Source: Cyanophora paradoxa CCMP329
Lineage: Eukaryota; Plantae; Glaucophyta
Assembly: GCA_004431415.1 (NCBI GenBank)
Contig: QPMI01000083.1
Location: forward strand, 36,495-100,494
Direction of reading: 5' to 3'
Length of the DNA: 64,000 nucleotides
The notes under the pieces were generated by a model. It had not been told where the DNA came from. It worked only from the letters and a program-made list of their open reading frames with translations, and searched no databases. Within the stretch, counting starts at the first letter, position 1; each line of letters opens with the position of its first letter. Shown piece by piece: positions 13,548 through 48,644 of the stretch. The position numbers and the translations under genes were made by a program.

Positions 13548-13657
13548 TGTTGCCAGCATAGTTTAGCTGGGGACTGGTATCATTGGGGTACAGGTACAGA
13601 CTGGGGGTACAGGTCTACAGGGACTTGGAATAATGGCAGTATATGCTCACTGCAATA
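13548..13657. repeat. Left LTR (110 bp)
   Basis: Identical to 18165-18274. Confidence 0.95.
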
Positions 13658-18164: not shown

Positions 18165-18274
18165 TGTTGCCAGCATAGTTTAGCTGGGGACTGGTATCAT
18201 TGGGGTACAGGTACAGACTGGGGGTACAGGTCTACAGGGACTTGGAATAATGGCAGTATATGCTCACTGCAATA
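18165..18274. repeat. Right LTR (110 bp)
   Basis: Identical to 13548-13657. Confidence 0.95.
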
Positions 18275-30314: not shown

Positions 30315-30760
30315 GCTTATTTCTCAATGAGCTCCGATCCGAGGCCGTAAATAAATAATCACAAACAACGAGCACAAATAATCACAGGACGAGGAGGCTC
30401 GGAGGCTTGGAGGCACAAATAATCATAGGACGAGCAAATGAGGAGAACTTTGACGAGCCGCTGAGCATGCACGAGAAACTACAGTTCAAATAGCATGCAT
30501 ATGCATGCGCGCGTTTCAAACTGAACGGAGTTTGCGTCACGCCCCGCCCATTGTTAACTTCTTCCGCCAATGAAATTAGCCCAGCGCAAACTTGAGCTCG
30601 AACTTGGCCTCGTACACAGTGGCGTACACACGCGGCCACAACGGTCACAGTAACGGTCAGCAGGCCGGCTTGCTAGTCAGCTTCCCTCGGCTAGGCCGGA
30701 CTAGCTAGCTTCCCGCCATCGCGCACGCCCGAGCGCGAGCATTCCTGCACGCCGCCGTGC

Positions 30761-32760
30761 ATGAAGCAGTCAAAGCGAAAGGAACCCAGCCTCTGGGATG
30801 ACGGCTTCGACGAGGCCCGACGTCGGCACCGCTGGCACGGCAAGCGACCCGACAGCAGCAGCTCGTGGGCCGGCAAGGGCAACATGAAGCGTGTCAACAA
30901 GATCACTCAGCAGGCGCGCAAGGCGAAGGAGCCCAAGCTCCCTGACCTCGACATCCTCAAGGGCGAGCACCCCGCGGCAACGGTCCGCTGCCTGGACACC
31001 AGCGGCCGCGCCTACCACGTTCGCCTTGGCGACTTCGTCATCTGTTCAGTTAGCTCAGACACCCAGCTGTGTCCAGAACTCAGCGTCGTTCGCCCGAAGC
31101 CCTTCCATTTCCCGCGCCCAGGTGAAACGATTTTGGCGCGAGTCGAGGGCGAGTTCCCAACACAGACGAAGGCGAAGCGCGGCGACTTCAACTACTCCGT
31201 CAACGGCGTCATCCTTCGGCGCTTCGTGCGCCCGGAGGACTCCGATGTGAAGGACTGCGGGCTCGGCAGCGTGATCATCAAGGCAGACGGGGAGCAGGCA
31301 GCCGTGGCCATCGCAAACCACCTCATCTACTACTCGAACGTGACGGTCCGCCCGCCGCGCCCGCGCCCCGTTCCAGCGTCCGATGCCCGTGCGCGCAGGT
31401 TCACGCACTCGCGAAGGTGGTGGCCGCGGACGAGTACAAAGCCCTCAACCACGCCGATCCCCACATCTACGTCTGTAAGCAAATCATGACGTTCCCGGGC
31501 GACGGCTCCTTCCAGTTCGACGTCGCCCTCGCCTTCAACGCGAGGCTCAAGCGAGTGGCGAAGAAGAAGATGGCGTGCTTCCTCCGGCCGCTGTCGAGGC
31601 CGGAGGAGCGCGTGGAGGCGATTGGCTACCTTCAGGACGCCGCCGCGAACGCCCTCAAGCGCCGGAAGACCGGGACGCAGCTTGTCAACGTCAAGATCCC
31701 GGTGGCCGGGCCGGCAATGTTGGTCTGCGGCTCTTATGACTCGTTCGAAGTTCTTTTTCCTATCCTCTAACGGTGCGCATCGCAGGAGAACATCGTGGCG
31801 CAGGTCGCGCACGTCGCCACGCCCATCGACCCGAAGACGGGCCAGCCGATCCCGGTTGACAAGCTGCCGGCGGCGAATCGCTTCGTTATCGAGCTTCCGG
31901 ACCGCGAGACCGCTGCTGGTGGAAGCCGCTTCCTTTTTCCCGCTCGCTGTTCTTTTTCCGACCTCTTTGCAGCTGTTCTCGGTCCCTCCGGCGTGGCGCA
32001 AGCGTCCAAGCGCGTCTGCAAGCGGGACGCGGACGGGAAGGCGATCCGGAAGCACAGCGAGATGCAGACCGTCACCGTCGAGAAGGCGTACGGCGGCTTA
32101 ATCGTGCCGCGCCACACGGGCTCCCATGACGTCGTCCAGTTCGACGAGCGTGCGCCCGGCCCGCCCTCGCCGCGCCGCTCGCTTACGAAGCTCTGCTCCT
32201 TGGGCGCGGCAGGTCCCGGTCGGATCGTGGCCACGAAGCGCTCGGGCAGGAAAGGTGGGCACGTCACGCTCGAGCTTCCGAGCTACGAGTACGGCCCCGA
32301 CGGCGAGCGCATCGCCAGCCTCGCGGGGCCCCTCGCGGCTGTCCCCGTGAAGCGCCCGCACCGGTGCCGCGCCGGCGCCAACACCGTCGCCAAGGCGCCG
32401 CCTGTCCCCGAAGCAGCCCCTTCAGAACCTGCCGCCGCCGCCCTGCCGGCCCCCGCCGCCGCCGCCCTGCCGGCCCCCGCCGTCGCCGCCCCGCCGGCCC
32501 CCGCCGCCGCCGCCCTGCCGGCCGCCGCCGCCGCCGCCCCGCCCGCCCCCGCCCCGCCGGTCGCCGCCCTGTCGGCCCCTGCTGCTGCTGCCCACCGGCC
32601 GCTGCCGCCCTACCTGCCCCCGCCGCATCCGCCTCGGTCCCAAGTGCGCCCCTCCCCCTCGCCCCCGCTCGGCTACTTGCTCGCCTAATCCTGCAGCAGG
32701 AAGGATCGCGCGGCACAGCTCGCGGCCGCGGTGGCGGCGCGCAAGAGGGCAAAGTCGTGA
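30761..32760 (+). CDS. BAH-domain protein, multi-exon, convergent with the RAG1-like gene
   Basis: BAH-like motif series YHVRLGDFV, ILARVE, RRFVRPED, LIYYSN, KVVAADEY, IYVCKQ. In-frame GT-AG introns at 31346-31398 and 31723-31785. Pro/Ala linker. Likely stop TGA at 32758-32760. Confidence 0.68.
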
Positions 32761-32801
32761 AGCTGCTACTGAGAATCGCACTATCTAGGTTACAAGGTGC
32801 G

Positions 32802-33649
32802 CTATGTCTGGTCCAAATCCATTTCGTCTATTTCCCCCTCCGCTAGATCGTCTGCTAGAACCTCTGCTAGGGCCCTATCATCGAAATCGAGCATGTTGGC
32901 GCCCTCATCCTCCGCCTCCATCTCCTCCTCCGCCTCCTCCTCTGCCTCGGCGTCGTACTCGGCGGTCTCCTCCTCCCCCTCCTCCTCGTCCCCGCTCTCC
33001 TCGGGCACCTCGTCCTCCGGCACCGGATCCCCCTCCTGCAGCTCAATATCCTCGTCGATCTCCTCCTCGTCCGCAGGCAGGGGCACCGCTGCCACCTCCT
33101 CGCCCCCCGGCGGCGCCGCCGCCGCCCCTTCGCCCTGCATAGCCGCTGACCGGTGGGGACGGGCCGCAGGTCGGGGGATGAAGGGCCCATCTGGCCAGGC
33201 CTTGGCGGCGACGGGCGCGTCGTACTCGGCGTGGGCAGCGTCCTTCCCGCCGGCGCTCGCCTCCGTCATGTTCCGCATCCACAGCGCCAGGCGCCGCCGC
33301 TGGTGCGTCATGATCTGCTTGAGCATGTCGAGGTCCTTGTTCCACCCGCCACCGAGAGACGTGACGGTGTGTCGCAGGCGCCGAAGGAGGCCCATGTAGG
33401 ACTCGATGACCTCGCAGCTCCAACGGCCGGGCGCGTTCGTGTTGTCGACGCGCGCCCAGAACGCGAGGTGCGCAAGCGTCGAGTGCATGTAGCGTGTGAA
33501 GATCTTCCATAACGGGAAGTGTGTCTCCATCAGGCCCTGGAGCTCGGCGACGGCCTCGATAACTTGCTGCCGCGCCTCCTCGTCGGGCTTCATGTTCCGC
33601 TCGTACTGGTAGATGATCTGGCGGAGCTGCCAAATCTCGTGCATGCCCC
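32802..33649 (-). pseudogene. RAG1/Transib-like transposase, C-terminal part with an acidic tail; interrupted by the viral insertion
   Basis: FTRYMHSTLAH..GRWSCEVIESYMGLLRR aligns with RAG1 ITNYFHKTLAH..GAWASEGNESGNKLFRR (Zn-binding His pair and catalytic Glu). Confidence 0.8.
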
Positions 33650-33995
33650 ACTTGACTTGTGTGCATTACACCCAAAATTTAACGCATTTTATTTACGACA
33701 TTCAGTAACAACTTTACGATTTCCGATACAACATAATATCACCATCAAACAATCGATGAAATACCCATTTAATCGATGAAATACCCAATATACCCATTTA
33801 ATCGTAAAGTATCAAAGTACGACAATCGATGAAATACCCAATATACCCATTTAATCGTAAAGTATCAAAGTACGACAATCGATGATACACATAAAACAAT
33901 CGAGGAATTCCCATATTTCTCGATTGAATCGATAAAAACAACAACACATAAACCATTCACAGTTACACCCGTTACACCCATTTCACATTACACCC
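33650..33995 (+). repeat. Left TIR (346 bp, with two copies of an internal 53-bp unit)
   Basis: Reverse complement of 45284-45576 plus one extra 53-bp unit. Confidence 0.95.
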
Positions 33996-35041
33996 TTTCT
34001 TAAATTATACTTCTTCCTCACGGTTACTTTTCGATTCGGTTTAATTCCTTCCTTTTTCATCTTCTGATTCACAGCATTTACCTTTTTCACTCGTTCTATC
34101 CGTTTTTGCGACGGTATCTTAATTACGTCTTTCACATTCACCTTCTGTAACTCTTGCTTCTTAAAGCGTCTCTTTACTTCCTTCTCGTCTCCGTCCATGT
34201 CCTCCAACACCTTAAACCTATTCCCGTCAGATCTTCCGACTTTATAGACCTTCTGACTGAATCGCGCGCCTTCCTTTTCAAATGCACTTTTTTTACCTTC
34301 TAACACTCGCACAGTATCGCCCGGTTTTACTGTATCCCTCTTTTCCTTCTCTTGAATATGCTTATTATGCACAATATCACGTAGATGTATAAAAAGCTGT
34401 TTCTGATCACTTGCAAATACCGCATTGGGTGAATCGTCTTTTAAGGAACTATGAGGTGAACCATTGTAAATTGAAAGAACTTCACCGATTAAATCTATCC
34501 ACTTCGTGGTTCCCTTTGACGTCATCGCCTTCCTCAAATATTGCTTAAAAGTCCGTGTGAATCTGTCAATAATTCCCAACTTATTACCAACTGTTACATG
34601 GTCATCTTTCGCAACATCTGTGTATAATCTTACGCCGTTAGCATCACACCAATCTTTATAAATTGCGCTGCTAAATTCATGATCTCCCGCCAATCCATTA
34701 ACCTTACCTGCCTCAACCTTAAACTTATTCAAAATTTCGCGGATTTCTTCATTTTTCTTAAACGGATACACGAAAGCCTTCCGACTTAATATATCAATAA
34801 AACTTATCATCTTGTAAATCCCATTATTCGCGGTTTGATATCCTTTAAAATTCATTATGTCCACCTGGAACGAATAAGGCATAGCAACAACTCTTAGAAA
34901 TGTCTTCGGTTTCTTTGGTTTCTTAAATATCTGATGCACTTCCGAATTTATAAAACGTTTCTTTAATTCTGCTTCATCAAATGTCACTTTATCGTTTATC
35001 AACTTCTGCCGGTATTTCTTGTAAGATAACACGTTATCCAT
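33983..35041 (-). CDS. Retroviral-like (rve) integrase of Polinton type
   Basis: FQVDIM..ISFIDILSRKAFVYP..GDHEF..IIDRFTRTFK..WIDLIGEVLSIYNGSPHSSL, plus a C-terminal SH3-like KPGDTVRV..FSQKVYKV. The first ATG overlaps the upstream stop (TAATG at 35043-35039). Confidence 0.92.
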   Translation of the reverse strand: MDNVLSYKKYRQKLINDKVTFDEAELKKRFINSEVHQIFKKPKKPKTFLRVVAMPYSFQVDIMNFKGYQTANNGIYKMISFIDILSRKAFVYPFKKNEEIREILNKFKVEAGKVNGLAGDHEFSSAIYKDWCDANGVRLYTDVAKDDHVTVGNKLGIIDRFTRTFKQYLRKAMTSKGTTKWIDLIGEVLSIYNGSPHSSLKDDSPNAVFASDQKQLFIHLRDIVHNKHIQEKEKRDTVKPGDTVRVLEGKKSAFEKEGARFSQKVYKVGRSDGNRFKVLEDMDGDEKEVKRRFKKQELQKVNVKDVIKIPSQKRIERVKKVNAVNQKMKKEGIKPNRKVTVRKKYNLRKGVM

Positions 35042-38000
35042 TACTGCGCTGCGCAATTACACCTATTATGAGACAAGAAACAGTTCGGCTTAATGTGGGC
35101 GATTGCGTTGTTATAACGGTCTACTGTCGCATCTTCCGAATCCATAATATCGCCACACCTTCCACAGCGTCCATGCTGCTTACCAAAGCGGTAACCCTTC
35201 CATTCCCAATCAACGTAATCCGCCACATCAAACTCGCGGTTACACTTCTTGTCTTCCGCCTTGTGTGATCTGATCTTAACGGCAAACTCCGCCTTCTCCA
35301 TACCAACTCTCCGTTTCTCGTCCTCATCTACGAAAATCACAGTGTCAGAAAGTCTTTCGGTTCGCGTAACTGCAACATAGAAACTCTCAGCGGTCATGTA
35401 TGGCGAGGTCGTCTGATACACAACTACCCGTTTATCTCTGATAGTGTCACCTTGAATGCTGTAACAAGTGAAACCATGCGATAATGCGAAATATTTGATG
35501 TCTTCGGGCTTCGCATTATAGATTTCTTCGCTGTCGACATCTTTTAGCGTAAGAACCTTTTCGGCTTCGTATTTGATTACTTCATATTCAAATCCGCGAT
35601 AAATGATACCCTCATTTGTTGTGATTTGATACTTTGCAATCAAACGCACACCTTCCTCATAAACCATGTCAACACCGTAAAGCATCCTATGCATCGCATT
35701 ATTCACTTCCGCGGACTTGCGGTTAGATTGAACTATGGAAATGTCGCCTTTTTCCATTTCATTCACAACTGCAAGACCTAACCGCGCCGCTGCCTCCGGA
35801 ACACGCATTTTTGTAACGAATAGATCATGTTTTAATTGATCTATTTTAACCTGATCTTCGGGGTCTTTGTGTCGCTTTCCGACTTCTAAGTAAACCTCAT
35901 TCTTAAACAACCGGTCAAAGATCTTGTTATAGTAGTCACGATGGTCAATGTCGATAAATTGAATCGGTGGAATCTGGAATGGATCACCTGTAACGATATA
36001 CAACTTATCCGGAAAATGGATAGTCATAATGTCTCTCAGCGCCTCCAATTCGCGAATGGGGAACTGGTAAACCTCATCGATAACAAAGCACTGATACCGG
36101 GATAAATCAGTAACCTGTTTTCCTACGTTGTCATTCATCTTCTCGGGGTCGATATTCAGATGTAATGACTTGTAGATGGTCTTTACATCGACCATATCAA
36201 CTTCGCACCACTCCTTTTTTAATTCCATGCGTAGTTGCTTGCATCGAATGTTAGTAGGCGCAATGAAAAGACAGTTTTTACCATACTTCCGTGTCATCGC
36301 CTTCGCTAACGTGGTCTTACCTGTTCCGGGTTTAACACCTCGAATAATCACGTTACCCTTTCCTTCCATAGCATTCACGATGGCTTCCACGTCGTATTCA
36401 TCCTTGAACTTGAACACCTTATGGTTAACCTTCTCGACCGTAATAAACCTCTCGTCGCGCTGTTTCAGTCTGTCGAATGTGATCCACCCATTAGCATTAT
36501 TCCGCTTCTTCTTCTTTGACTGCTGCGACGCGATCGGAGCAAGATTAAACGGTTTCACGTCATACTTTCCGGTGTTCTCGAAAAGGTCACGGTCAAACGG
36601 CTCAAATGGGTATGGCTTGTCTATAAGAAACTCATCGGTTCTGATGCGTAGAACTCCGACACCATCAGCTCTTAGATCCTTAGCAAGTTTATACATGATC
36701 CCACGCATGATACTGTAAATCTGACACTGGATAGGTAGGAAACCATCTATAAGCATCTTCTCTTCTCCTTCCTGGTTTACATACCATAACATCGGTGTCT
36801 CCGTCTTTGCCTCATTCCTTACAGTCGTCCGCTTCGGCTTCTTTGAATCGAAATTTAGCGATCTCAGTTTACCGTCGTTCTCTTGGACAAAGTTAAGCGC
36901 GTCGTTCTTGTTAAAGAATATCGTCGTTTGGATTTTTCGCTGGGATTTCTTACCAAACTTCCCGATAGTATGATTACTGATATCCTTCTTTTCCTTGATC
37001 GAAAGATTAGACGCGAATAACTGTTTGAAAGCCTGCAACGTGACGTTTTTAACAACCCGGTATGGTCTTACCACTGCTTCGATAATCACATCGTCGCGGA
37101 TGTCATCGTAGAACTCTTTTAACACGGCACCATACAGAAGGTTAAATTTTGAGTCTACAAGGATACGTTTGTATTGCGACATGTTGTTAATCAATTGGTC
37201 TTTGCGATTTACCGTAAAGTGTTTTGCTCTTACTTTCACCGAATAGAAGGCGTCCACTTCGATATCATCGCTACATGTTACCACAACCTTTTCGAATCGA
37301 TCGAATGAACTAAACACCAAGAAGTTTATAATGCGTTTCGCTACGATATGTGTGTATGCTTTGGAGATATCCAATTTATGCGTATCGAATGCGCCAAACA
37401 TAATGTCTTCAAATAATTCCCGCAATTCAGCGGTAGAAGTCGCGAAAAACCCATTTAATGCGCTCTGTTGTCCTTTCGTGAATGCCGCGAATGTCTCAGG
37501 GTTGTATTTGCTCTTAACATTCCTGTTAATGAGCGCGCGATTCATCATCTGCGACATTTCGTTAAAGAGTTTCCGGTGTTCTTCATCCCTAAGGTTAACG
37601 TCAACATCATCCATATTTACCATGTTGCCGGGTGGTAATATACATACATCGATGTCTTCGATCTTGTAATGGATGTAGCTAACTATACCTTCATCGGAAA
37701 TAGTCGCGTTAACTTCGTGGTTCGCTCTTCTGAAACTCCCCAACAATTCGAATAACGGCTTACTGTAAGTGATCGTAACTTTTGTGGCGTTGTTCTCCTT
37801 CTCGCGTTTAACAATCTCCACTATTTCTTCCTCAGAGTATGCCGGATGGCTGATATCGTTAAACTGTGTTTTGATCTTGTATTTTAGCGACGATGAACCC
37901 ACCGCTTTGGTTTCACGCGCCGCTGTTCCATTGAAAGATCGCACAAGTTTACTAAGGTCTTTATTCAACACATACACGTGATCGTTAGAGATCTGAACGT

Positions 38001-39141
38001 AAACGCTTGCCGGGACAAGGTGTGAATTTGTCCGGGTAGGTTTGTAACACAGAGAATGTATAACCTTGTCGTCTTTTCCGATTGCGATAAAGCGGATGCG
38101 CCACTTTTGCAAGAATGGTAGTATTTCGTTAAAGGACGTCCCCCAATCGGATGTGTCAGTAGGCGCGTGTCCTTTGATCTGCTCATAAAGCCATTCCTTC
38201 GAATAATTGACCTTCTTGTATTTGTTGATACTGTGGGCATATTCGAAAGATTTCACGATGACCTGATGTAACGCCTCTATTAAGCAATCCTTGATGATAA
38301 GTGACTCATCGGGTTTAATCTGATCCAATACAGATTTTGCGCCACCATTAAGGGTATATTTGATGAAACGCGAAACGATCTTAGGCGCCTCTCCGTCTCT
38401 AAGCGCTCTTTCATTCAGAGGGTAAACCGTGGTATTGTCACTTACTACGATTTCTTCGATAGACATAACATCGGGATACGGAATATCGGAGCCATTCACT
38501 TGTGGGTTAGCGAAAATTTTCACATAATTGTAATCCCTGTTATTTGCGTTACGATCCGCGATGTTTAGTAGGAAAGTGGCGATATTATCGATTTCCCAAA
38601 CGGCAAGGAAGTTATTAAATTCGTCTTCCACTTCGGCGAGTCTTGCAATTAATACGTCTTTCGGGCAAGTCATAATTAACGCCCTTTTTCCGCTCTTCTG
38701 TGTCTCAACGTAAGGTGTGTCATTGTGTAAGACTACATCGCGGTTCTGTGGTAGATTATCGATATCATCAGGAAGTGCGTAGAACCTAACGTGAACCGAA
38801 ACAGTTTCGCCATTTTCTGCTTCAATACGACGAATGAGACGCCTTACCTTTCCCTTGAACTTCTTCCCTTCTTGCTTCTGAATGTTCTTAATCGTTCTCT
38901 GTGCGCGCTTCTCCTTCTTCTCCTGCTTGCGCTTCTTCCGCTCTGCGCGGATTTCCTCCTTAGTCTTCTCCTTCTTCTCACTCTTCCTTGCTTCGAGTTC
39001 CTTTACGACTCTTTCGAAACGGTCATTAGCGATTCGCTTAATTGCATTACCGATAAACGGGATGCTGCGAATACCGGGTAGATTGGTAATGGACTCTACC
39101 ACAGATCCGATGATATTCTTCACTGTTGCAAATGAAAACAT
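35041..39141 (-). CDS. 1366-aa replication protein: putative vOTU-like protease + divergent family-B DNA polymerase + SF1 (RecD/Pif1-like) helicase + HNH/EndoVII-like nuclease
   Basis: PolB-like motifs LDISKAY (A), KDISNHTIGKFG (B), IRTDE (C). Helicase motifs GVKPGTGKTT, IAPTN, VIDE, TGDPFQIPPI, TCYSIQGDT, YVAVTR. C-terminal CGRC..TVDRYNNAIAH..NCFLSHNRCN. N-terminal DCLIEAL..NDHVY Cys/His pair. Confidence 0.85.
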   Translation of the reverse strand: MFSFATVKNIIGSVVESITNLPGIRSIPFIGNAIKRIANDRFERVVKELEARKSEKKEKTKEEIRAERKKRKQEKKEKRAQRTIKNIQKQEGKKFKGKVRRLIRRIEAENGETVSVHVRFYALPDDIDNLPQNRDVVLHNDTPYVETQKSGKRALIMTCPKDVLIARLAEVEDEFNNFLAVWEIDNIATFLLNIADRNANNRDYNYVKIFANPQVNGSDIPYPDVMSIEEIVVSDNTTVYPLNERALRDGEAPKIVSRFIKYTLNGGAKSVLDQIKPDESLIIKDCLIEALHQVIVKSFEYAHSINKYKKVNYSKEWLYEQIKGHAPTDTSDWGTSFNEILPFLQKWRIRFIAIGKDDKVIHSLCYKPTRTNSHLVPASVYVQISNDHVYVLNKDLSKLVRSFNGTAARETKAVGSSSLKYKIKTQFNDISHPAYSEEEIVEIVKREKENNATKVTITYSKPLFELLGSFRRANHEVNATISDEGIVSYIHYKIEDIDVCILPPGNMVNMDDVDVNLRDEEHRKLFNEMSQMMNRALINRNVKSKYNPETFAAFTKGQQSALNGFFATSTAELRELFEDIMFGAFDTHKLDISKAYTHIVAKRIINFLVFSSFDRFEKVVVTCSDDIEVDAFYSVKVRAKHFTVNRKDQLINNMSQYKRILVDSKFNLLYGAVLKEFYDDIRDDVIIEAVVRPYRVVKNVTLQAFKQLFASNLSIKEKKDISNHTIGKFGKKSQRKIQTTIFFNKNDALNFVQENDGKLRSLNFDSKKPKRTTVRNEAKTETPMLWYVNQEGEEKMLIDGFLPIQCQIYSIMRGIMYKLAKDLRADGVGVLRIRTDEFLIDKPYPFEPFDRDLFENTGKYDVKPFNLAPIASQQSKKKKRNNANGWITFDRLKQRDERFITVEKVNHKVFKFKDEYDVEAIVNAMEGKGNVIIRGVKPGTGKTTLAKAMTRKYGKNCLFIAPTNIRCKQLRMELKKEWCEVDMVDVKTIYKSLHLNIDPEKMNDNVGKQVTDLSRYQCFVIDEVYQFPIRELEALRDIMTIHFPDKLYIVTGDPFQIPPIQFIDIDHRDYYNKIFDRLFKNEVYLEVGKRHKDPEDQVKIDQLKHDLFVTKMRVPEAAARLGLAVVNEMEKGDISIVQSNRKSAEVNNAMHRMLYGVDMVYEEGVRLIAKYQITTNEGIIYRGFEYEVIKYEAEKVLTLKDVDSEEIYNAKPEDIKYFALSHGFTCYSIQGDTIRDKRVVVYQTTSPYMTAESFYVAVTRTERLSDTVIFVDEDEKRRVGMEKAEFAVKIRSHKAEDKKCNREFDVADYVDWEWKGYRFGKQHGRCGRCGDIMDSEDATVDRYNNAIAHIKPNCFLSHNRCNCAAQ

Positions 39142-39202
39142 CTTATAGGCGTTCTTATTATATACACTATATTTTATTTCTTTAAGTGATTTTCATACAT
39201 TG

Positions 39203-39214
39203 CGTCATTTTTTG
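39203..39214 (-). promoter_or_regulatory. CAAAAAATGACG motif upstream of the replication gene
   Basis: One of five perfect copies; ~60 bp upstream of the ATG. Confidence 0.75.
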
Positions 39215-39375
39215 GCGACACCGCAAAATCCACAAAATCCGCTTTTGAGGGTTTAATAAAAATAACAAAAGGGTCGACCACCATTTGATGGTCTTAAAAA
39301 TAACTCAAACACTTTAACAATGTTTAAGCGCGATTGCGCCTTATCTTCCTCAGCGATCGCGCCGGGAAAAAAGGA

Positions 39376-39630
39376 TTAACAATGAATTGATGGGCGACCC
39401 CGATTAGTTCGCGGGACGTCGAATAGATATTTAATGTATAGAATCGTGTTATTTACATATTGCGCCTTACACGAGGTCGCTATGTGTTTCTGTCTAAATG
39501 CGTCATCGTTATTATACAACTCACTCCACTTAACATTGCGTTTTTCATTGAATCGCGCAAGCGCTAACATACCCTTTTCTGTGCTGCGGTAGCGATAAAT
39601 CGCGCGTTTCTGAGATTCGCTTAGCGGCAT
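39376..39630 (-). CDS. Small basic hypothetical viral protein (84 aa)
   Basis: ATG-initiated ORF (MPLSESQKRAIYRYR) preceded by both conserved upstream motifs. Confidence 0.7.
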   Translation of the reverse strand: MPLSESQKRAIYRYRSTEKGMLALARFNEKRNVKWSELYNNDDAFRQKHIATSCKAQYVNNTILYIKYLFDVPRTNRGRPSIHC

Positions 39631-39720
39631 TCTCTTGTTCCTCTTCTGATATATAGCAAGAAATCTTTAAGTCCTTTTCTTATCGTGTATATAACATGTC
39701 GATCAGTTTTTTTAAAACAC

Positions 39721-39732
39721 CGTCATTTTTTG
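39721..39732 (-). promoter_or_regulatory. CAAAAAATGACG motif
   Basis: Perfect copy ~90 bp upstream of the ATG at 39630. Confidence 0.72.
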
Positions 39733-39955
39733 CGCATCGATAATAAGAAGATGCCGGAAAAATAAGCCGAAAGTATCGCTTTCTCGATTCTACGAATGAA
39801 CCCCGTAGAACAGGTGATTAAAAAGCGTGATCATGGATATGTCACGACTTCTCTACAACGCCACTTATAAAAATAAGTAAACGTGAGCGCAAACTTTCGG
39901 AATGGAGGGTTTAGCGCTATTCTTTGAAAAGAAATTTTTAACGTAAGAATGATCC

Positions 39956-40702
39956 TTAACGGCGATAACCTGGACGGAGACCCAATTTAGCGAATCCGGA
40001 AAGCATCGGCACCGCATTGGGAATCGAGTTAAGCGGGTCAGATTGTGATGTAGCAACCCGTAAGATAGACTTATTTAACACCGGCAAATCCGTTTTATTG
40101 GATTCTTGATAATCGATCGTCTTAGCGATTAATTCCATCGGTGTGTGTTTTTCCTCTTTGATTGGATCGGGAAGGACATCAAACGTAACATTTGGTTTCT
40201 TGTCTACCTTCTCTTTGGTTATCGGTTGCTCCGTTATCTTCTTCTCTTTCTGCGTCTCATCGGCGATTCCCTCAACGAGACTTTTAGCGTGTTTATAAGT
40301 AATCGTTTTTAGTCCACCGGTAGTTGCTCTGATAAAGTAACGGTTACGGTGGTCTTTTTCCGAAAACGTGGAATATAGACGCTCGCCACCATCGAGGAGT
40401 TTAAGAAGAGTCGACTTTTTATCGACCTTATCGATTGTCGCGCTCTTAAATTGTCCTTTCTTAATTCCACGCTTTGCACCCGGCATACGGTTTAGCGGCA
40501 CTTGCTCAACGAGGGCGTTACCATCGTTAGCGTCATATACTGGCGCCACAGCACTGGAATTAATCACGTTATTAATATTCTTATCGATATCAGCGGTTCC
40601 GTATGCTGCGGTTCCTTTCGATTTCTTGTATTGCTTCCGTTCCGGTTCCGCTTGTTCGACGGGTTTCGCTAAGAAGTTTTTCGGTTGTGTCTTGCGAGCC
40701 AT
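39956..40702 (-). CDS. Lys-rich hypothetical viral protein (possible core protein)
   Basis: Long ORF directly downstream of the penton. The first ATG (MARKTQ) is at 40702. Confidence 0.7.
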   Translation of the reverse strand: MARKTQPKNFLAKPVEQAEPERKQYKKSKGTAAYGTADIDKNINNVINSSAVAPVYDANDGNALVEQVPLNRMPGAKRGIKKGQFKSATIDKVDKKSTLLKLLDGGERLYSTFSEKDHRNRYFIRATTGGLKTITYKHAKSLVEGIADETQKEKKITEQPITKEKVDKKPNVTFDVLPDPIKEEKHTPMELIAKTIDYQESNKTDLPVLNKSILRVATSQSDPLNSIPNAVPMLSGFAKLGLRPGYRR

Positions 40703-40734
40703 TTGAATTAAAGAAACAAATTTATTATACAAAA

Positions 40735-41637
40735 TTACATATTACGACCGAACGGTAAATAGACATTTTCCAAATCCCTTATAACGTTTTTCAATGCTGC
40801 TTTTGTAAGATCCTTTTCATCTTCGGTGATCAGTTCGAGAGTCATAGACCAATCCGTGGTAATGTCCGTTTCGTTACCATTCCAATACGTCAAACGCACT
40901 TTAAGCGTCTCAACTTCCACTAATCCGTTTTGCTCATGGACGATCATAGAGTTATTGGTAGAATCATATTTTAGAAGACTACCTACCGTCTGGTCAATCT
41001 CAATTTTAGCAAGCGCTTTATCGTCGCTGGTATTCTTGCTTACGTAATTACCTTTGAGTGGATCAACATGTAGAAGGATGTAAGAATTAAACAGAAGGTC
41101 GAGCGGATTAACACTATCGAGGTAATGATTATAAGTATAAGCACCAACAGTTACCGGTGAATCGAGAGCGGTAGATGGATAACCTAAACCCGAGCCTAAA
41201 AATGACGGTTCCGGGAAACCTAAGAAATTGGCTAAAATCATGTTACCAAATCGTATAGTAAATTCAACTTCGCCGTAAATCCTTAGTTTCATCGTGATAG
41301 GATCATAAGACACACTGAAATGACGGGTGTAAGTAGTCCCGGATGCACCAAAGACTTGTGACAGCAAAATAGCATTTAGATAATTCACCAAACTATCCGC
41401 TGTGTAAGTCCCTTTCGAAATTGAATTCGTTTTAGTTTTGGTTGCCCCTTGTCCATCGAGTGTAGAGGTTACAAGCGCTCCATTTTCGCTGAGATTGTAA
41501 ATGTTATTAAACATTTCGAAATTGGTAATACGACACGCTTTAACATTTTGGATTGCATGGGGAAGTTTGTAAGAATAGTTTGTGGGGATTCCATCATCCC
41601 GATCCCGGGAATCAATATTTAGATAGTAACGCGTCAT
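40735..41637 (-). CDS. Minor capsid (penton) protein, single jelly-roll
   Basis: N-terminal YLNIDSRDR..PTNYSYKL..NVK..NNIYN, GTYT..L..LN, and C-terminal LKVRLT..G..DWSMTLE, typical of PLV/NCLDV pentons. Adjacent to the major capsid gene. Confidence 0.82.
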   Translation of the reverse strand: MTRYYLNIDSRDRDDGIPTNYSYKLPHAIQNVKACRITNFEMFNNIYNLSENGALVTSTLDGQGATKTKTNSISKGTYTADSLVNYLNAILLSQVFGASGTTYTRHFSVSYDPITMKLRIYGEVEFTIRFGNMILANFLGFPEPSFLGSGLGYPSTALDSPVTVGAYTYNHYLDSVNPLDLLFNSYILLHVDPLKGNYVSKNTSDDKALAKIEIDQTVGSLLKYDSTNNSMIVHEQNGLVEVETLKVRLTYWNGNETDITTDWSMTLELITEDEKDLTKAALKNVIRDLENVYLPFGRNM

Positions 41638-41689
41638 TCTGTTTAATAATATAATTTAAAAATTTCTTTTCGTATTTTAAACATAAGAC

Positions 41690-42916
41690 ATGGCGCTTAC
41701 TGGAACGACCCTTAAAGAACTCCTCGTTACTCCCGGATCGGATCAAATTTATCTATCTCCCGGTCTTCAAATCGGAACCAACCCCAAGTATAAGCCGTTC
41801 CTTGAACAGGTTCGCCCACGTGGTAACACTTTCGGTTTCAAAACGACCGCTTATTTTGATCTACCACGCAAGCAACTACTAAGTGGCGTTTCGCTTTACT
41901 TTAAGGTTACTACCGGTGGAGGTGTTGCTTGTGATCTTCCCAATGGTGGCGCTTCTTTCATTAAAGAGGTTCGCTTCGTCCATGGTGGGTTTAAGTATAT
42001 CATCCCTGGTGATTGGATCACTGTAAACACTCTGATTGATAATGATAATGCGACGCTAAGCACTATGTTTATGTCACTGGGTGTAGGTGAGGAAACCACC
42101 CGTGAAATTACCAACAAGTCGATTGAATACGTTATTAAGATTCCGGCGGCTTTCTGGGATGATGCGTATTTTCCACTTTGCGTTCTCGCGGACATGCCCA
42201 CTATTGAGGTAGATTTCCGCGAGGCTGCGGTAGTTAACGTTCCTGCTGGTGGATCTGTTACCATGAGTGATTGTGGGCTAATCTGTCAATTCGTTAACAT
42301 TGCATCTGCGGAAGCTGAGACTCTCCTTAAAATGGCGAATGAACAGGGAGGCATTCGTATTCCCATTACGGAAGTCATCCACAAAAAGACGCGATCACTG
42401 AAAACTGCCGATTCAGGTGAGGCGGTCGAGGTTACACTTGCTAACGTTTCCGGTCTGGTTCATTCTATCCTTATGACTGTTCGCGATGTTAACAAACTGG
42501 ATAAACACACTCACTCTGATTTCTACGGTGTGGGATCTGCTGTTAAAATCGATGAGTTCCAAATTTTCCATAACAACCGATCGCTTGAAATCTCTAATAA
42601 ACCTATTTCTGGTTTCCTTTCTGCTGCTAACCATATCCCATCGCATTACAAAGGCGCGACCGTCGGTAATACTGTGTTTGGTTTTGAAAATGCATGTGTT
42701 TATGGTGTGGTTCTTTCAAAATCTGGTAAGGATTCGCTCCATAATTCAGTCATGGGTTATCAGGATTTCTTTAATAGTTCGAGTTCTTACATGGATCTAA
42801 CCGTTTCCGGTTGCACAGATGCTGCGCCTGTCCAAGTAGACATCTATTCGTTACGACATAACATCATGATTCTTAATGGCTATAACATTTCGACACTGAA
42901 AGTTTCCAACTTTTAA
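41690..42916 (+). CDS. Major capsid protein, double jelly-roll
   Basis: 408 aa, beta-rich. Pattern FDLPRKQLLSGVSLYFKV, FIKEVRF..GG..GDWI, YVIKIP..FPLCVL..TIEVDFR. Lies between penton and packaging ATPase. Confidence 0.82.
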   Translation: MALTGTTLKELLVTPGSDQIYLSPGLQIGTNPKYKPFLEQVRPRGNTFGFKTTAYFDLPRKQLLSGVSLYFKVTTGGGVACDLPNGGASFIKEVRFVHGGFKYIIPGDWITVNTLIDNDNATLSTMFMSLGVGEETTREITNKSIEYVIKIPAAFWDDAYFPLCVLADMPTIEVDFREAAVVNVPAGGSVTMSDCGLICQFVNIASAEAETLLKMANEQGGIRIPITEVIHKKTRSLKTADSGEAVEVTLANVSGLVHSILMTVRDVNKLDKHTHSDFYGVGSAVKIDEFQIFHNNRSLEISNKPISGFLSAANHIPSHYKGATVGNTVFGFENACVYGVVLSKSGKDSLHNSVMGYQDFFNSSSSYMDLTVSGCTDAAPVQVDIYSLRHNIMILNGYNISTLKVSNF

Positions 42917-43013
42917 AGTTCTTTTCTTTCTTTAAAGTAGGAATCCTGCGAGTTGCGTATAGGTTAGCGCGTTATTTTGTTTTTTATCTTATTACTGTAA
43001 CGGACACACAGTA

Positions 43014-43766
43014 ATGGATATAGATTTAAATGATATTCCCGAATTCGACCCGGTTAAAACAGCTAAGTTACCTTCGCGTTTTTTGCATGTCGGGCGCTCC
43101 AATTCTGGTAAGACGACGTATTGTAAATATCTACTTTATGAACTGCGTGATAAGATCGATCAGATTGTAGTGTTTAGTTCCACTGCGTTTACCGGTCAAT
43201 TCAGAGATATAACGCATCCTGATAATATCTATGAGGAATGGGATGATAATGTGGTAATAAAACTCATTAGTATGCAAAAGAAACGAATCGAAAACAATGA
43301 GAAACGTAATAGTTTGGTAATTATCTTAGATGATATGATCGGTTCTAATTTGGATATGCATAATTCAGCTGTGTTATCCAAACTGGTAACGAGTGGAAGA
43401 CATTATAATATTAGCGTGATTTTCAATGTCCAACGTTTATGCTCTATTTCTACTACCATTCGTCGTAACGTAGAATTCGTGGTATTCTTTAACATCCTCG
43501 GAAATGAGAAAGAGTTTAATTGTGCATACGATGAATATAACGGTGGATTGGATAAGAAGACTTATAAAGAACTACATAGACTTTGGGGTTACAATTATCA
43601 GACCGTCATAACTGGATTGCAAGGATATGATATAAAGACCTATACCGATCGCGCAATATTGACAGATGATGACATGAAAGCATTCCGCAAGTTTGTTAAG
43701 AAACGAGCGATAAAAAAGAGAGAATCGATAAGAATTAGTAATGAACCCACGACTATTACAGTGTAA
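43014..43766 (+). CDS. A32/FtsK-HerA-type DNA packaging ATPase
   Basis: Walker A GRSNSGKT, Walker B VIILDD, and GRHYNISVIFNVQ..IRRN. Confidence 0.95.
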   Translation: MDIDLNDIPEFDPVKTAKLPSRFLHVGRSNSGKTTYCKYLLYELRDKIDQIVVFSSTAFTGQFRDITHPDNIYEEWDDNVVIKLISMQKKRIENNEKRNSLVIILDDMIGSNLDMHNSAVLSKLVTSGRHYNISVIFNVQRLCSISTTIRRNVEFVVFFNILGNEKEFNCAYDEYNGGLDKKTYKELHRLWGYNYQTVITGLQGYDIKTYTDRAILTDDDMKAFRKFVKKRAIKKRESIRISNEPTTITV

Positions 43767-44061
43767 GTTTCTTTTTGCGCTCTGCTAATTTCTTTTGCAA
43801 TCTACCACGAACAGGCTCGATATATCCATATTGTCCATCTTCCCAACATGTGATGATATGAATAAATTCACCGCGCATGTGTTCTTTAACAGAAGGGTTT
43901 AACTTCTTACCGTTAGTTCCTCCGATATGCTGAATATATCCCGTAAAGAATTCATCGAATTTCTCCAATTTTCTATTTTCCTCATTACATAGGAAAGTTT
44001 CCATAAACTTATGCGATTTCGCAACACCACAGCCAATACCTTTGGTATATTTCCCATTCAT
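43756..44061 (-). CDS. Hypothetical viral protein (101 aa)
   Basis: ATG ORF in AT-rich DNA with the conserved motif ~30 bp upstream. Confidence 0.7.
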   Translation of the reverse strand: MNGKYTKGIGCGVAKSHKFMETFLCNEENRKLEKFDEFFTGYIQHIGGTNGKKLNPSVKEHMRGEFIHIITCWEDGQYGYIEPVRGRLQKKLAERKKKLTL

Positions 44062-44092
44062 CTTGTAAGGTTACAAAAACTTCTAAAAAGGA

Positions 44093-44104
44093 CGTCATTT
44101 TTTG
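44093..44104 (-). promoter_or_regulatory. CAAAAAATGACG motif
   Basis: Perfect copy ~30 bp upstream of the ATG at 44061. Confidence 0.75.
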
Positions 44105-44123
44105 CCCGTGCTTAATGTTACGT

Positions 44124-44411
44124 TTATTGGTTCTTTCGAGCTTCGAGTTTCTTTTTTAATTTCAATTTGATTAAATTCCGATCATGTCGGGCTTCTGCTA
44201 AATTGATAGTTTCATTATACGATGGTTGTATGTAGGTTTCGTTTGCTTTTCTAATTGCTTTTCTTGCTGAACTTGAAACCTTCGAAAGATTACACCCGGT
44301 TGTATCGGTAAACACCTTATCGGTTATTGCTTTTATGCGCTCTTCTTCCGATAAATCAGGATTAACGTAAAATCCCAAATGATTCGCGAAATACTCTTTT
44401 GTAATCGCCAT
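44124..44411 (-). CDS. Hypothetical viral protein (95 aa)
   Basis: ATG ORF with the conserved motif ~30 bp upstream. Confidence 0.7.
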   Translation of the reverse strand: MAITKEYFANHLGFYVNPDLSEEERIKAITDKVFTDTTGCNLSKVSSSARKAIRKANETYIQPSYNETINLAEARHDRNLIKLKLKKKLEARKNQ

Positions 44412-44413
44412 GG

Positions 44414-44806
44414 TTACAGGTTGTGGTTTTGTTGTGGTGGCGCGTCATTTTTTGTCCCGACATCGATAGACTTAATATATTCTTGCAAAGTTGCATTTTG
44501 TGGAATCCACGGAATATACTTTTTATACTCTTCCACTTCGAGTGAGTAATTATAGAAATCATACGGTGTTAGGAGTTCTAAGAATTCAATATTTTTATTG
44601 CATTTTCCACAGATTAGGACGCCATTAAGTATGTTACATTCACAATTCCCAAGTATTGCAAAGTTACATATCTTACAGCGTCGTTTTACAGTAAAAGGTA
44701 AGTCTATATCATCTCTTTTAAGGCAATCGCTACATATACTTCTGAGTCTCCAATGTTTTAGGCGAGAATACGTAATACCACAGTATCTGCACTTATCCGC
44801 TTCCAT
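44414..44806 (-). CDS. Cys-rich (multiple CxxC) putative zinc-binding viral protein (130 aa)
   Basis: CRYC, CSDC, CKIC, CEC and CGKC; conserved motif upstream. Confidence 0.7.
   Translation of the reverse strand: MEADKCRYCGITYSRLKHWRLRSICSDCLKRDDIDLPFTVKRRCKICNFAILGNCECNILNGVLICGKCNKNIEFLELLTPYDFYNYSLEVEEYKKYIPWIPQNATLQEYIKSIDVGTKNDAPPQQNHNL
44443..44454 (-). promoter_or_regulatory. CAAAAAATGACG motif, embedded in the upstream ORF
   Basis: Perfect copy ~30 bp upstream of the ATG at 44411. Confidence 0.72.
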
Positions 44807-44833
44807 TTTGTTGCAATGGTTATTTTAAGAAAT

Positions 44834-44845
44834 CGTCATTTTTTG
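44834..44845 (-). promoter_or_regulatory. CAAAAAATGACG motif
   Basis: Perfect copy ~27 bp upstream of the ATG at 44806. Confidence 0.75.
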
Positions 44846-44898
44846 CATCGGGCAAAATTTGACAGAGTTTAAAAGGAATCCGAGAAGTTGTAATAACG

Positions 44899-45282
44899 AT
44901 GGGGTGGGAAACAATCGGAAGTGAAGATAAAGAAAAATGTGGATGCCACACAGTGCGGGAAGTCCATGACTTTTTCAGTTATGAAACGACTTCTGAGGTG
45001 TTATGTGATAAACACCAAAAGGAAAGGGACGAAAAATATGAAGAAAACAAGAGAAAGCGTGAAGAGTTAGAAGAGGAATTTAAAAATCGTTCGAGTGGTT
45101 TAACTGTTACTCTGGTTCCGCGAAAGTATTTAACATGGGATGAGAAGAATTTCATATGGAATAAGACGTGGAAGGATTTGTTGAAATATATAAAAAAGGA
45201 AAATGGAAGATATTATGTGTGTCAAACGCGTGTCGATCTTTTACGTGAAATGGAAATAGTAGAAACTTACAATAAGAAGTGA
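44899..45282 (+). CDS. Hypothetical viral protein (127 aa; CGC..C..H, then a coiled coil)
   Basis: ATG ORF ending immediately before the right TIR. A variant motif CAAAATTTGAC lies upstream at ~44853. Confidence 0.68.
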   Translation: MGWETIGSEDKEKCGCHTVREVHDFFSYETTSEVLCDKHQKERDEKYEENKRKREELEEEFKNRSSGLTVTLVPRKYLTWDEKNFIWNKTWKDLLKYIKKENGRYYVCQTRVDLLREMEIVETYNKK

Positions 45283-45283
45283 T

Positions 45284-45576
45284 GGGTGTAATGTGAAATG
45301 GGTGTAACGGGTGTAACTGTGAATGGTTTATGTGTTGTTGTTTTTATCGATTCAATCGAGAAATATGGGAATTCCTCGATTGTTTTATGTGTATCATCGA
45401 TTGTCGTACTTTGATACTTTACGATTAAATGGGTATATTGGGTATTTCATCGATTAAATGGGTATTTCATCGATTGTTTGATGGTGATATTATGTTGTAT
45501 CGGAAATCGTAAAGTTGTTACTGAATGTCGTAAATAAAATGCGTTAAATTTTGGGTGTAATGCACACAAGTCAAGT
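45284..45576 (-). repeat. Right TIR (293 bp)
   Basis: Reverse complement of the left terminus. Confidence 0.95.
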
Positions 45577-46345
45577 TGCCCCTCGTCTTCTCGCTCCAGC
45601 TCTCCTTACTGTCGCCGAAGCAGATGCTGAAGAGGGTGTCGGGCGCCTCGGGGTCCTCCAGGATCTTCTTGGCGGTGTTGGCGGAGATCTTCTGGAAGAA
45701 CTTGTAGGTGGCCCCGTTCTCGGTCTTCTCGAACTTGATGTTCCGCGCGTATTTATCGCGAAGATGACGCTGCAGGTCTTCGATGCGCTTCTGCTGGTCC
45801 TCGGAGGCACCACAGGCGAGGGCGAGGAAGAAGTAGACGAAGAACCCGGCCACCCAGCTCTTGATGCCGTGCAGGGCGTCGTCGAGCCGGACCTGAGGTG
45901 CGCGTTGGCGTCCGCTGAGGCGAGGTGTCGCGGGCTTCTCACCTCGACGGCAGCGACGGGCAGCATGCTGTTCGGGAGCGGCTGCAGGAGGGCGTTGGCG
46001 TCGTGCTCGGGGGTGCGCGCGGATTCTCTGTTCGCTGGCTGGAGGGAGGCCGTCCCGATCCCGCGGCCCTGCTGCGCGCACGACTTCGACCGCCGAGCAC
46101 TCGGACCTGCAGTAACGTGAGCCCCATGCCGAATCTCAGCGCGTGTGACTCGGCGAACTGACCCGCGTCGGTGGACAGAATCGCAGTGCGGGCACAGGTC
46201 GAAGCCGAGGAGGACGCGGAGGAACTTGTAGTCGCCCGTCACCAAGAATTCGACCTCGACGGGCTTGTCGTGCTCGTACCCGGGGATCAGGGTGAGCGGG
46301 TTCTCGTTCAGGTACTCGACCATGTCTGGCGGCCGGACGATGTCT
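45577..46345 (-). pseudogene. RAG1/Transib-like transposase, central part; N-terminus not found
   Basis: EFLVTGDYKFLRVLLG..LCPHCD resembles RAG1 GYDEKLVR..ICTLCD. Phase-0 intron at 45893-45942. LDDALHG resembles IDALHC; LQRHLRDK resembles LDKHLRKK; ISANTAKKIL resembles MNGNFARKLM. Confidence 0.78.
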
Positions 46346-48644
46346 GCAGCTAGAGTCACCAGCTGCAGTCTGCACCTGGCTTGAATACGACAGATTTACT
46401 AGTTATTCTGCTATCGTGCGCGCACCGTGGCACCGTGGCACCGTGGCACTCAGTGACTACCGAGAGTGGCGGGCGGGCTGGCGGGGCGGGCTGACAGGGC
46501 GGGGCGCCTGGCGGGACAGTCGGGGGCCTCCGGGACACTCTGGCAGTCCGGGGGCCTCGGGAGCCTATTTTCGCGCCATACAAGGCCTCCCCGACCCTGC
46601 AGCTGCATAGGAGGCCTTATATAGTGCTTTAAAAAGGTTCTCTAAGCTTTTTTCGATGTCTCCCAGCTCCTGGGGCGATGGGCCCAATTTGGAAGGGCCA
46701 AAAGTCAGCAGAAGACTAGCTGTAACGTAGTGTATAGGCGTATGATGAGTCATATGGTATGACGGGTTAAATGGGCCCATCGCGGGGCTTTGTGCAGGGC
46801 ACTAAATAACGCCGTGTGACGCCTCTACATCTTGAATAAAAAGTTCTAATCAAGATACGAGGCTGCCGTGCTTCAATCGCAAGCCTCGGAGTGCAGATTC
46901 CCTGGCAGATCAAAAATTGCGAACGCGATACCGGGGGTCGCCGCGCGCTCGCAGCCTTGCGAAACCTTGAGAGCGGATAAGATTGCCGCCGACAGCGAGC
47001 CCAGCTCCCCGCTCGCAGTGCAGCCGCGCGCTTAAGGCGCCGGCCAGCCACTTGGCCCCGGCTGCAGCTGCTCCGGCACGGGCGGCCTCAGCCAGCCGGC
47101 ACCATGCTATCGCAGCTTCAGCCATGAGCCTCGGAGAGGGCGGAAGTCTCCGAGGCTCGGTCCGCGATCCAGGGCAGGCGTGCGTATGTTCCAAGTTCGC
47201 GGGCGAGGGCGTGCGCCTCGCCGAATCGTTGTCGCGGCGTGCGCCTCGCCAGGTGTACTACAGTGCCACAGTGCCACGTTGTCGAAAGCGCGAGCCGCTC
47301 AGTCAGCCGAGTTTCCTCCGCTGGCCAACCGGGTACGCATACGCCCGGCCGGCCCGGCATGCCACGAGAGCGCCCGCGGCGCTTCACGCGGTCTTCCTTC
47401 ATCTCCGTGACCCGCTTCTGCGAGACGAGGTCGGTGGGGGCAGCGGCTGCTTGCCGCAGTGCATGGATTGCCAGCCCCAGGTGCGAGGCCTTGACTCATC
47501 CCGAGCTTCCCGAGCAGATTACCAGGCGCGCCGGCGTAGCTCAGCGCCGATTGGGTCTGGCACGGTCCGCCTTTGCGGCCGACCCCGGTTCCGTGCCCAA
47601 GCCGTTCCGACCTTCCCGAGCAGATTACCAGGCGCGCCGGGCGCACCTAGCTCAGTGTCGCCGAGCTTATAGGCTAGGCTTGCTCGGAGGCTCCGGATGC
47701 ACGCACAGTTAGCCAACCCAGCCGCGCCCCGCGTCCCCGCCCGGCTGTCGTGTGGGCGACGCATGCGCAAAAGGAATGTCGCGTGCCGCGATTCCCTCGG
47801 ATTAGGCTAGCCGGCAGTCTATGCGTAGCCGCTAGCCCTAGTCTAGTGCTATCGAGCAGCTAGCTCTAGCACTCTCTGTATTCTGACTTAGCGCCGGGCG
47901 CGACTCCGTTTGGGGGTACGCGATCCCTGGACGGGTACACTTGTGAATAGACCACTTGTGCTCCCAGCTACAGCCCCAGCCCGTGCGTGACCGCACGGAC
48001 GCTGCACCGGGTGGGAATCCTCTCATCCGACAGGCGCCATCTGCTCACGGAGCCAGAACCCCGATCATCAGCGACCCGTCATCAGCAACCGACCCAGCTC
48101 GGCGACCGCGGCTCAGCCGGCGCGCAGGTAGACCTCAGCAGAGGTCGTGGGTCGCTTCTCGCGCCCCGCCTGCGCCGCTCCGGGCTGATCCGCAGTTGGC
48201 GACCGAACATTCTGGAAAGAACCAGAACTTAGTCCTGCGGATCCAGGAACGCGCGCGAATACCGAGGGATCCCCGTCCCGATCGGATCGTCGCCGTTTCC
48301 TGAGCGAGCTGCGTGCGAGCCCGTGGGATCATTCCTGATCGGTCGCTAGTCACTCGCCGCGACGCCAGCCTTCTCCGGCTGTTGCGATCGTGCTGGACAA
48401 GACGAAGAGCGATCGGATCGACGGCTGAGGCGTGCGCGCCCGAGCTGTCTCCGGAATCGCCGCAGCCGAGCTAGTGAGCTTGCTCGCCGCTGCTGTGGAC
48501 CACGACGGCCTCGGATCTCGAGCGAGGCACATTCTCTCACGGAAAAGCGTGGCATTACGTCGCCGCTTGACCTGAGAATGTCCTCGGGACCGGAGCCTCC
48601 GCGAGTTCGTCGTCCGGGCCGCGCACGCGCGTGGCGCCGCCGAC

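Follow-up and report, generated by a model that had tools for sequence, protein, structure and literature searches.

The 64-kb stretch of DNA analysed here (the window) comes from the glaucophyte Cyanophora paradoxa and carries, tail to tail, a gene with the motifs of a DDE transposase and a second gene, termed here the partner gene. The transposase gene is divided by a polinton-like virus. An earlier note on this locus, made from the sequence alone, had read the pair as a candidate RAG-type transposon with a BAH-domain chromatin reader in the place of RAG2. Considered together with its copies elsewhere in the genome, the region probably represents one dead copy of a DNA transposon of C. paradoxa that is young, present in many copies and equipped with two genes, for a CMCT-clade transposase and for a partner protein. 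The two genes are laid out in the window as follows.

30761-32760, plus strand: partner gene, about 585 aa, apparently complete, mapped by exact matches of paralog models P0021 and P0024
About 30761-31348, 31399-31722, 31786-32149, 32213-32637 and 32701-32760, plus strand: exons of the partner gene
32758-32760, plus strand: stop codon of the partner gene, in a short last exon
32761-32801: interval of 41 bp separating the two stop codons, which converge
46326-45578 and 33649-32802, minus strand: transposase gene, window copy, interrupted by the polinton-like virus
32802-32804, minus strand: stop codon of the transposase gene
32802-33649, minus strand: 3′ part of the transposase gene, from MHEIWQ to the stop, with TRYMHSTLAH (two His), GRWSCEVIES (catalytic Glu) and an acidic tail
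33650-45576: polinton-like virus insertion, 11,927 bp, dividing the transposase gene
45578-45892, minus strand: transposase exon VRLDDALHG...SWSEKTRG, with DALH (third conserved His), LQRHLRDK and SANTAKKIL
45893-45942, minus strand: 50-nt transposase intron, phase 0, GTGAGA...CAG (GT..AG)
45943-46326, minus strand: transposase exon or exons, from DMVEYLNEN through GDYKFL (second Asp) and CPHC to PEHDANALLQPLPNSMLPVAAVE, with an uncertain frame or intron at 46158-46015
46327-46450, minus strand: breakpoint zone, with an acceptor-like ...CCGCCAG directly before the DMVEYL exon

Read on the minus strand, the frame of the host gene reaches the virus at ...SWSEKTRG and is picked up beyond it at MHEIWQLRQ..., and the frame is kept across this join once the virus and one copy of its target-site duplication (TSD) are taken out. 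The intact paralog models P0005 and P0017 contain the exact sequence EKTRGMHEIWQLRQ and are therefore continuous across the viral junction. Furthermore, the 50-nt intron connects frame A of the transposase, which ends in ...PVAAVE, with frame B, which begins with VRLDDALH, and the paralog models make the same join between AAVE and VRLDDALH. The earlier note had restored a protein by removing the virus and one intron, and this reconstruction is borne out. So are its further observations that the motifs GDYKFL, CPHC, DALH, LQRHLRDK, SANTAKKIL, TRYMHSTLAH and GRWSCEVIES..LLRR follow one another in this order, that the convergent stops lie about 41 bp apart and that the transposase has a long acidic tail.

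The window copy lacks its beginning. Residues 1-514 of P0017 gave no tblastn match anywhere in the 64-kb window. In P0017, the roughly 514 residues upstream of DMVEYLNEN include RVRLAGDGT with the first Asp, which is thus missing from the window copy; the earlier note had remarked that it is not visible there. Because these residues are encoded nowhere in the window, the copy must be truncated at about 46327-46450; an 8-mer, GTGCCACG, occurs three times within this breakpoint zone (at about 46420-46446). Without its first 514 or so residues, including the first catalytic Asp, and with a virus inside it, the window copy is dead.

Gene models of the different copies disagree in the stretch from CPHC to PEHDANALL (about 46158-46015). 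At 46012-46019 the window and the copies P0005, P0016 and P0017 seem to differ by 4-5 nt in runs of CGCGCGC and CCCCC. They could be true indels or could stem from errors in long-read assembly, and the frame shifts that they cause probably account for out-of-frame stretches in the published models of the transposase family.

In the product of the partner gene, a basic N-terminus is followed by a beta-rich stretch, a middle part and a Pro/Ala-rich tail. The product is identical to P0021 of tig00000331, and the window is probably the tig00000331 locus; the C-terminus, KDRAAQLAAAVAARKRAKS, is also present in P0024, P0022, P0011 and P0014. Just upstream of the partner gene, on the minus strand at 29148-30311, lies a 387-aa Pro/Ser-rich open reading frame (ORF) with no Pfam match, which may be a host gene, a part of the element or an artefact of GC-rich sequence.

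Copies of the two genes in the Cyanophora genome

A phmmer comparison of the conserved C-terminal piece of the transposase with 1.84 billion representative proteins returned three related proteins and one unrelated repeat protein. All three relatives are EukProt models of Cyanophora paradoxa, and this search found no homologue outside Cyanophora; a metagenome scan yielded no relative. Further copies were collected by word-seeded searches and from cluster listings of protein models, the transposase lists being restricted by protein length. Transposase models were found at a minimum of 10 loci on ten contigs, and they include the uninterrupted copies that the earlier note had thought worth seeking (for example P0017 and P0005). 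At eight of 10 transposase loci the partner lies within two gene numbers of the transposase:

tig00000944: transposase g5968, partner g5967
tig00000137: transposase g8141, partner g8140
tig00021244: transposase g19564, partner g19565
tig00000829: transposase g4677, partner g4676
tig00021374: transposase g21139, partner g21138
tig00021137: transposase g19027, partner g19028
tig00021168: transposase g19134, partner g19135
tig00020531: transposase g10066, partner g10064

At a ninth locus (tig00021758), transposase g23402 and partner g23407 share the contig and are five gene numbers apart. The co-occurrence of the partner with other transposase copies, on which the earlier note had staked its two-gene element, is therefore found. 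Moreover, partner models occur on about 20 contigs, so that the partner is not a single-copy syntenic host gene.

In gene-number order the partner comes first at some loci and second at others, a pattern that insertion in either orientation would produce. The flanks, too, differ between loci: the partner model of tig00000944 is fused with a ketoacyl-synthase host gene, a gene that the window lacks. Most copies show zero amino-acid substitutions in well-aligned blocks, the tig00021758 copy being the most diverged in both genes (P0007, which is g23402, and P0022, which is g23407). Besides the intact copies there are broken or truncated ones, namely the window copy, P0015 and the partial tandem copies in P0020. 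The copy number, the identity of the copies and the linkage of the genes together argue for a recently amplified mobile unit that includes both, and they support the view that the two genes form one repeated unit. In C. paradoxa, genes are densely packed and often lie end to end with overlapping untranslated regions (PMC6704402), and for this reason the 41-bp convergence alone carries little weight; it is the repeated linkage that is the special feature of the pair.

Some of the copies have peculiarities of their own. P0020 (tig00020848_g14527, 803 aa) contains a complete partner copy and, after it, part of another, in a tandem or nested arrangement, and tig00021374 has two partner genes, g21133 and g21138. 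The P0007 transposase model continues into unrelated sequence after AKAWPD, which suggests another insertion at tig00021758. A second related virus was considered for this odd C-terminus and rejected, the alignment to the terminal inverted repeat (TIR) of the window virus scoring only 26. ENA contig L001 was likewise set aside as a further copy, since its protein is a mis-clustered, unrelated one of 54 aa.

Nothing above chance was found in the window as a transposon TIR and TSD around the pair, whether by self-BLAST, by short inverted-repeat BLAST or by a TIR-plus-TSD scan with shuffled controls. This agrees with the remark in the earlier note that the element ends are not visible. Specifically, TIRs resembling recombination signal sequences (RSSs, with heptamer and nonamer), 5-bp TSDs and 5′-CA..TG-3′ termini were not found around the pair in this truncated copy. 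Two candidate ends were rejected: a CACAGTG at 30615, which is unpaired and whose motif occurs in the window at the chance rate, and three CACGGTG at 46423-46445, which are not paired.

Family placement of the transposase and nature of the partner

The catalytic and zinc-site residues were numbered on the intact paralog model P0017 (970 aa). They are D442 (in GDGT), D546 (GDYKFL), C559 and C562 (CPHC, 559-562), H617 (DALH), H768 and H773 (HSTLAH) and E792 (SCEVIES). The D-D-E triad is complete in P0017; at the motif level, the window copy keeps the second Asp and the Glu only. The C(2)C, further His and H(4)H motif set of the CMCT clade is present as CPHC, DALH and HSTLAH. For RAG1 we take the corresponding residues to be D600 and, as in the earlier note, D708, C727/C730, H795, H937/H942 and E962. 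On this presumed numbering, D442, D546 and E792 would correspond to D600, D708 and E962, the interval between the first and second Asp is 104 residues in P0017 and 108 in RAG1, that between the second Asp and the DALH His is 71 in P0017 and 83 in P0005 as against 87 in RAG1, and the His pair lies 24 and 19 residues before the Glu in P0017 and 25 and 20 in RAG1.

The CMCT clade comprises EnSpm/CACTA, Mirage, Chapaev, Transib, Plavaka, ESTA, Lanisha and RAG1, and the D-D-E and C2/H3 motifs are common to all of them (PMC12730594). The motif set therefore places the transposase in the clade, not specifically beside RAG1, and membership of the clade is supported at this level. Of the likeness to the RAG1 core that the earlier note had seen, the order and spacing of the motifs stand; the motifs themselves are CMCT-wide, and every match to RAG1 fell below significance.

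These matches are nevertheless to RAG1 only. Among Pfam families, RAG1 (PF12940) was the only one matched by C-terminal pieces of the transposase (E 0.022-0.046, 12-13 bits), the best score of 13.3 bits (E 0.022) lying below the 25-bit cut-off. The match covers profile positions 556-628 of 653, and window positions 33198-33644 give E 0.032. Whole ORFs and whole transposase proteins gave no Pfam match, and only short C-terminal pieces reached the RAG1 model. The plant CACTA families of Pfam (Transposase_21, DUF4218 and others) were unmatched at E up to 10. A phmmer search of the Protein Data Bank (PDB) returned zebrafish RAG1 (3jbw_A, E 1.4) over the His-His-Glu stretch TNYLHKTLAH...GAWASEGNESGNKLFRR; the piece with the two Asp and the CxxC and the piece with DALH gave no RAG1 match in the same database. 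In addition, phmmer of the most conserved piece against the 1.84 billion proteins retrieved no RAG1 or Transib sequence. The weak RAG1 matches are located in the C-terminal part of the transposase, and the C-terminal domain is the best-conserved part between RAG1 and Transib according to Kapitonov and Jurka (PMC1131882).

The AlphaFold2 model of the transposase was unusable (pLDDT 36.5), its alignments holding near-identical copies only. Foldseek with this poor model placed RAG1 chains at ranks 1, 2, 6, 11 and 16 (E 0.13, TM about 0.16), with probabilities of 0.91 and 0.89 for the top two. As a rough control, the equally poor partner model (pLDDT 29, likewise unusable) returned only noise. To our knowledge, no CMCT member other than RAG1 has a solved structure, so that structural matches cannot separate the branches of the clade. 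Placement of the transposase in the RAG1/Transib branch, as judged from these weak similarities, is not established.

Residues 487-521 of P0017, SCYALLPLMLFGGSDSEENLRPRIKPLADMVEYLN, which are not in the window, gave a weak match to the end of the Pfam DUF1280 profile (E 0.26-0.3). This stretch presumably resembles RAG1 around LMLADESDHETL.

The partner protein matched no Pfam family at E up to 10 in seven models and two sub-pieces, one noise match excepted. Specifically, the BAH profile PF01426 gave no match at E up to 10 with P0021, with its residues 60-260 (P0021:60-260) or with six other models, and no kelch or PHD domain was found by Pfam in any partner model at the same threshold. The PDB yielded 0 matches. 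These tests (Pfam, PDB and Foldseek) have low power for an orphan sequence. By eye, GDFVIC, ILARVEGEF, ILRRFVRPEDS and NHLIYYSN form a BAH-like pattern, which is a reading and not the result of a tool. The identification of the partner as a BAH-domain gene in the earlier note is thus not supported by Pfam, the PDB or Foldseek, and is not established.

The viral insertion and other features of the window

The insertion that divides the transposase gene is, by its gene content and ends, a polinton-like virus of a protist. The GC content of the viral block is about 40%, as against about 65% in the sequence around it and about 62-74% in the rest of the window. Most of the viral ORFs have no Pfam match. 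The features recognized are these:

33650-33832 and 45394-45576: perfect 183-bp TIRs of the virus
33644-33649 and 45577-45582: 6-bp TSD of the virus, TGCCCC on the plus strand
33983-35056, minus strand: integrase-like ORF (weak rve match, E 0.17)
35041-39141, minus strand: 1366-aa protein with a superfamily-1 (SF1) helicase domain
40735-41637, minus strand, and 41690-42916, plus strand: capsid-like ORFs, assigned by position and not recognized by Pfam
43014-43766, plus strand: A32-type packaging ATPase (Pox_A32, E 1e-16)

No relative of the capsid-like ORF of 408 aa was found in IMG/VR.

Elsewhere in the window, a minus-strand ORF of 682 aa (15115-17163) that has Integrase_H2C2 and rve domains lies between two perfect direct repeats of 110 bp (13548-13657 and 18165-18274), and the segment 13548-18274 looks like a long terminal repeat retroelement or its remnant. 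A 138-bp tandem repeat (4.2 copies, 100% identical) occupies positions 1-579, at the very start of the window.

Alternative explanations and significance

The structure of the locus and its copies can be brought together in the following proposal. The first gene of the transposon would encode, in intact form, a CMCT DDE transposase of about 970 aa with an RNase-H-type D-D-E triad and Cys2/His3 zinc-site motifs at RAG1-like spacing. The second gene, of about 585 aa, lies tail to tail with the first in the window and accompanies it in nearly every copy, and the unit would move by cut-and-paste. The most likely role of the partner is that of an accessory factor in transposition, acting in DNA or chromatin targeting or in regulation. 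In the window, the transposase gene has lost its 5′ half and with it the first Asp, and a polinton-like virus would then have integrated into what was left of the gene, producing the 6-bp TSD.

Several points weigh against this proposal. All similarities to RAG1 are below normal significance, and the three signals (Pfam, PDB and Foldseek) are not independent because they derive from the same sequence, mostly from its C-terminal part. Neither AlphaFold2 model is usable (pLDDT 36 and 29). Gene adjacency was taken from gene numbers in the published annotation, and the convergent orientation was seen in the window only. Mobility is deduced from copy number and identity only, because no TIRs or TSDs were found. 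Finally, 12 partner loci have no listed transposase; given the length restriction on the lists these loci are not interpretable, and the window itself, with its broken transposase, is such a locus.

With respect to the branch of the CMCT clade, we lean, if only slightly, towards EnSpm/CACTA, Chapaev, another non-Transib lineage or a new one, in which case the second gene would encode a DNA-binding or regulatory protein of TnpA type. Members of the clade commonly have a second or third gene, and the divergence of the transposase from RAG1 and Transib is beyond the reach of phmmer. The D-D-E, C(2)C, further His and H(4)H motifs, the last three between the second Asp and the Glu, and the long helical insert from the second Asp to the Glu are shared with CMCT lineages in general, some families of which have accessory genes, such as the TET/JBP genes added in fungal families (PMC12730594). 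Its size of about 970 aa, its long N-terminal region and the several introns of its gene also set the transposase apart from Transib, which is 3-4 kb long and has one transposase of about 700 aa, 38-bp TIRs starting with CACAATG and 5-bp TSDs (PMC1131882). However, the CACTA families of Pfam remained unmatched where RAG1 was matched, and the H(4)H motif and overall spacing fit RAG1. The genes of CACTA elements usually lie in order on the same strand, whereas the pair in the window is convergent. The element further differs from the known members of the CMCT clade in that it has no significant sequence match to any of them, a partner without known relatives and a glaucophyte host.

An element of the RAG/Transib branch specifically, with an independently recruited BAH-type chromatin reader as its RAG2-like partner, seems unlikely. 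In its favour are the spacing of the D-D-E, CxxC, DALH and HxxxxH motifs, which is near that of RAG1 on the presumed numbering, and the fact that RAG1 was the sole family returned by Pfam and PDB searches in which the plant CACTA families gave nothing; the Foldseek matches, also below threshold, were to RAG1 as well. The convergent layout, known here from the window, resembles that of ProtoRAG (PMC9435367, PMC7204232) and of other RAG1-like and RAG2-like pairs, and the partner looks BAH-like by eye (GDFV..., ILARVE..., ILRRFVRPEDS, NHLIYYSN). Against this stand the generality of the motif set among CMCT lineages (PMC12730594), the restriction of structural comparison to RAG1, the failure of phmmer over 1.84 billion proteins to find RAG1 or Transib, and the silence of Pfam, the PDB and Foldseek on BAH. 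Furthermore, neither RSS-like TIRs nor 5-bp TSDs were seen in the window, and the CACAGTG at 30615 is what chance would give.

RAG2 has its counterpart here in a protein without kelch or PHD domain by Pfam, and unlike RAG1 the Cyanophora transposase has an acidic tail and many introns. The DDE transposase of Transib is likewise akin to the RAG1 core and best conserved in its C-terminal domain (PMC1131882), whereas the Cyanophora element has two genes and no Transib-type terminal features that we could find. Pairs of RAG1-like and RAG2-like genes are already known from a unicellular alga, Aureococcus anophagefferens, whose AanRAGL is, like the Cyanophora element, a recently active two-gene element of RAG1 type; its RAG1L and RAG2L are recognizable, however, have a single exon each, lie in the same orientation rather than convergently and are flanked by asymmetric TIRs and 5-bp TSDs (PMC9435367). 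In a search of the literature, Cyanophora and Transib were not found mentioned together. Of the two-gene RAG-type transposon of the earlier note, the repeated two-gene unit is supported (eight of 10 loci); the assignment to the RAG1/Transib branch is not established. We regard as improbable the full form of that idea, a glaucophyte RAG1/Transib-branch lineage, very recently active, that acquired a BAH-like, chromatin-reading, non-RAG2 partner independently and in convergent geometry.

That the pair is no transposon at all, and instead a domesticated gene pair or a host gene cluster that segmental duplication has multiplied, would agree with the lack of termini and TSDs and with the end-to-end packing normal in this genome (PMC6704402), but is very unlikely in view of the copies, at least 10 to 20 in number, that are scattered over different contigs and mostly free of amino-acid substitutions, the neighbours that vary by locus, the broken or truncated copies (the window, P0015 and P0020) and the DDE transposase motif set of the protein.

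The favoured interpretation, a young two-gene CMCT transposon, has consequences for the annotation of this genome: some 30 of the Cyanophora gene models represent genes of the transposon, and many of these models are mis-spliced around small indels. If its termini and the role of its partner were worked out, the element would stand as a very divergent CMCT/RAG1-like transposon that is probably still active and that comes from outside the animals, fungi and plants. With an obligately linked second gene unrelated to RAG2 or TnpA, it would offer a natural case in which to ask why RAG1-type enzymes recruit partner proteins. Were the partner BAH-like and the transposase of the RAG1/Transib branch, the RAG-type design of a nuclease plus a chromatin-reading partner would have arisen more than once. 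Because the transposase family is invisible to ordinary homology searches, it has probably been missed by surveys of RAG/Transib origins, and such surveys may miss other hidden families of this kind.

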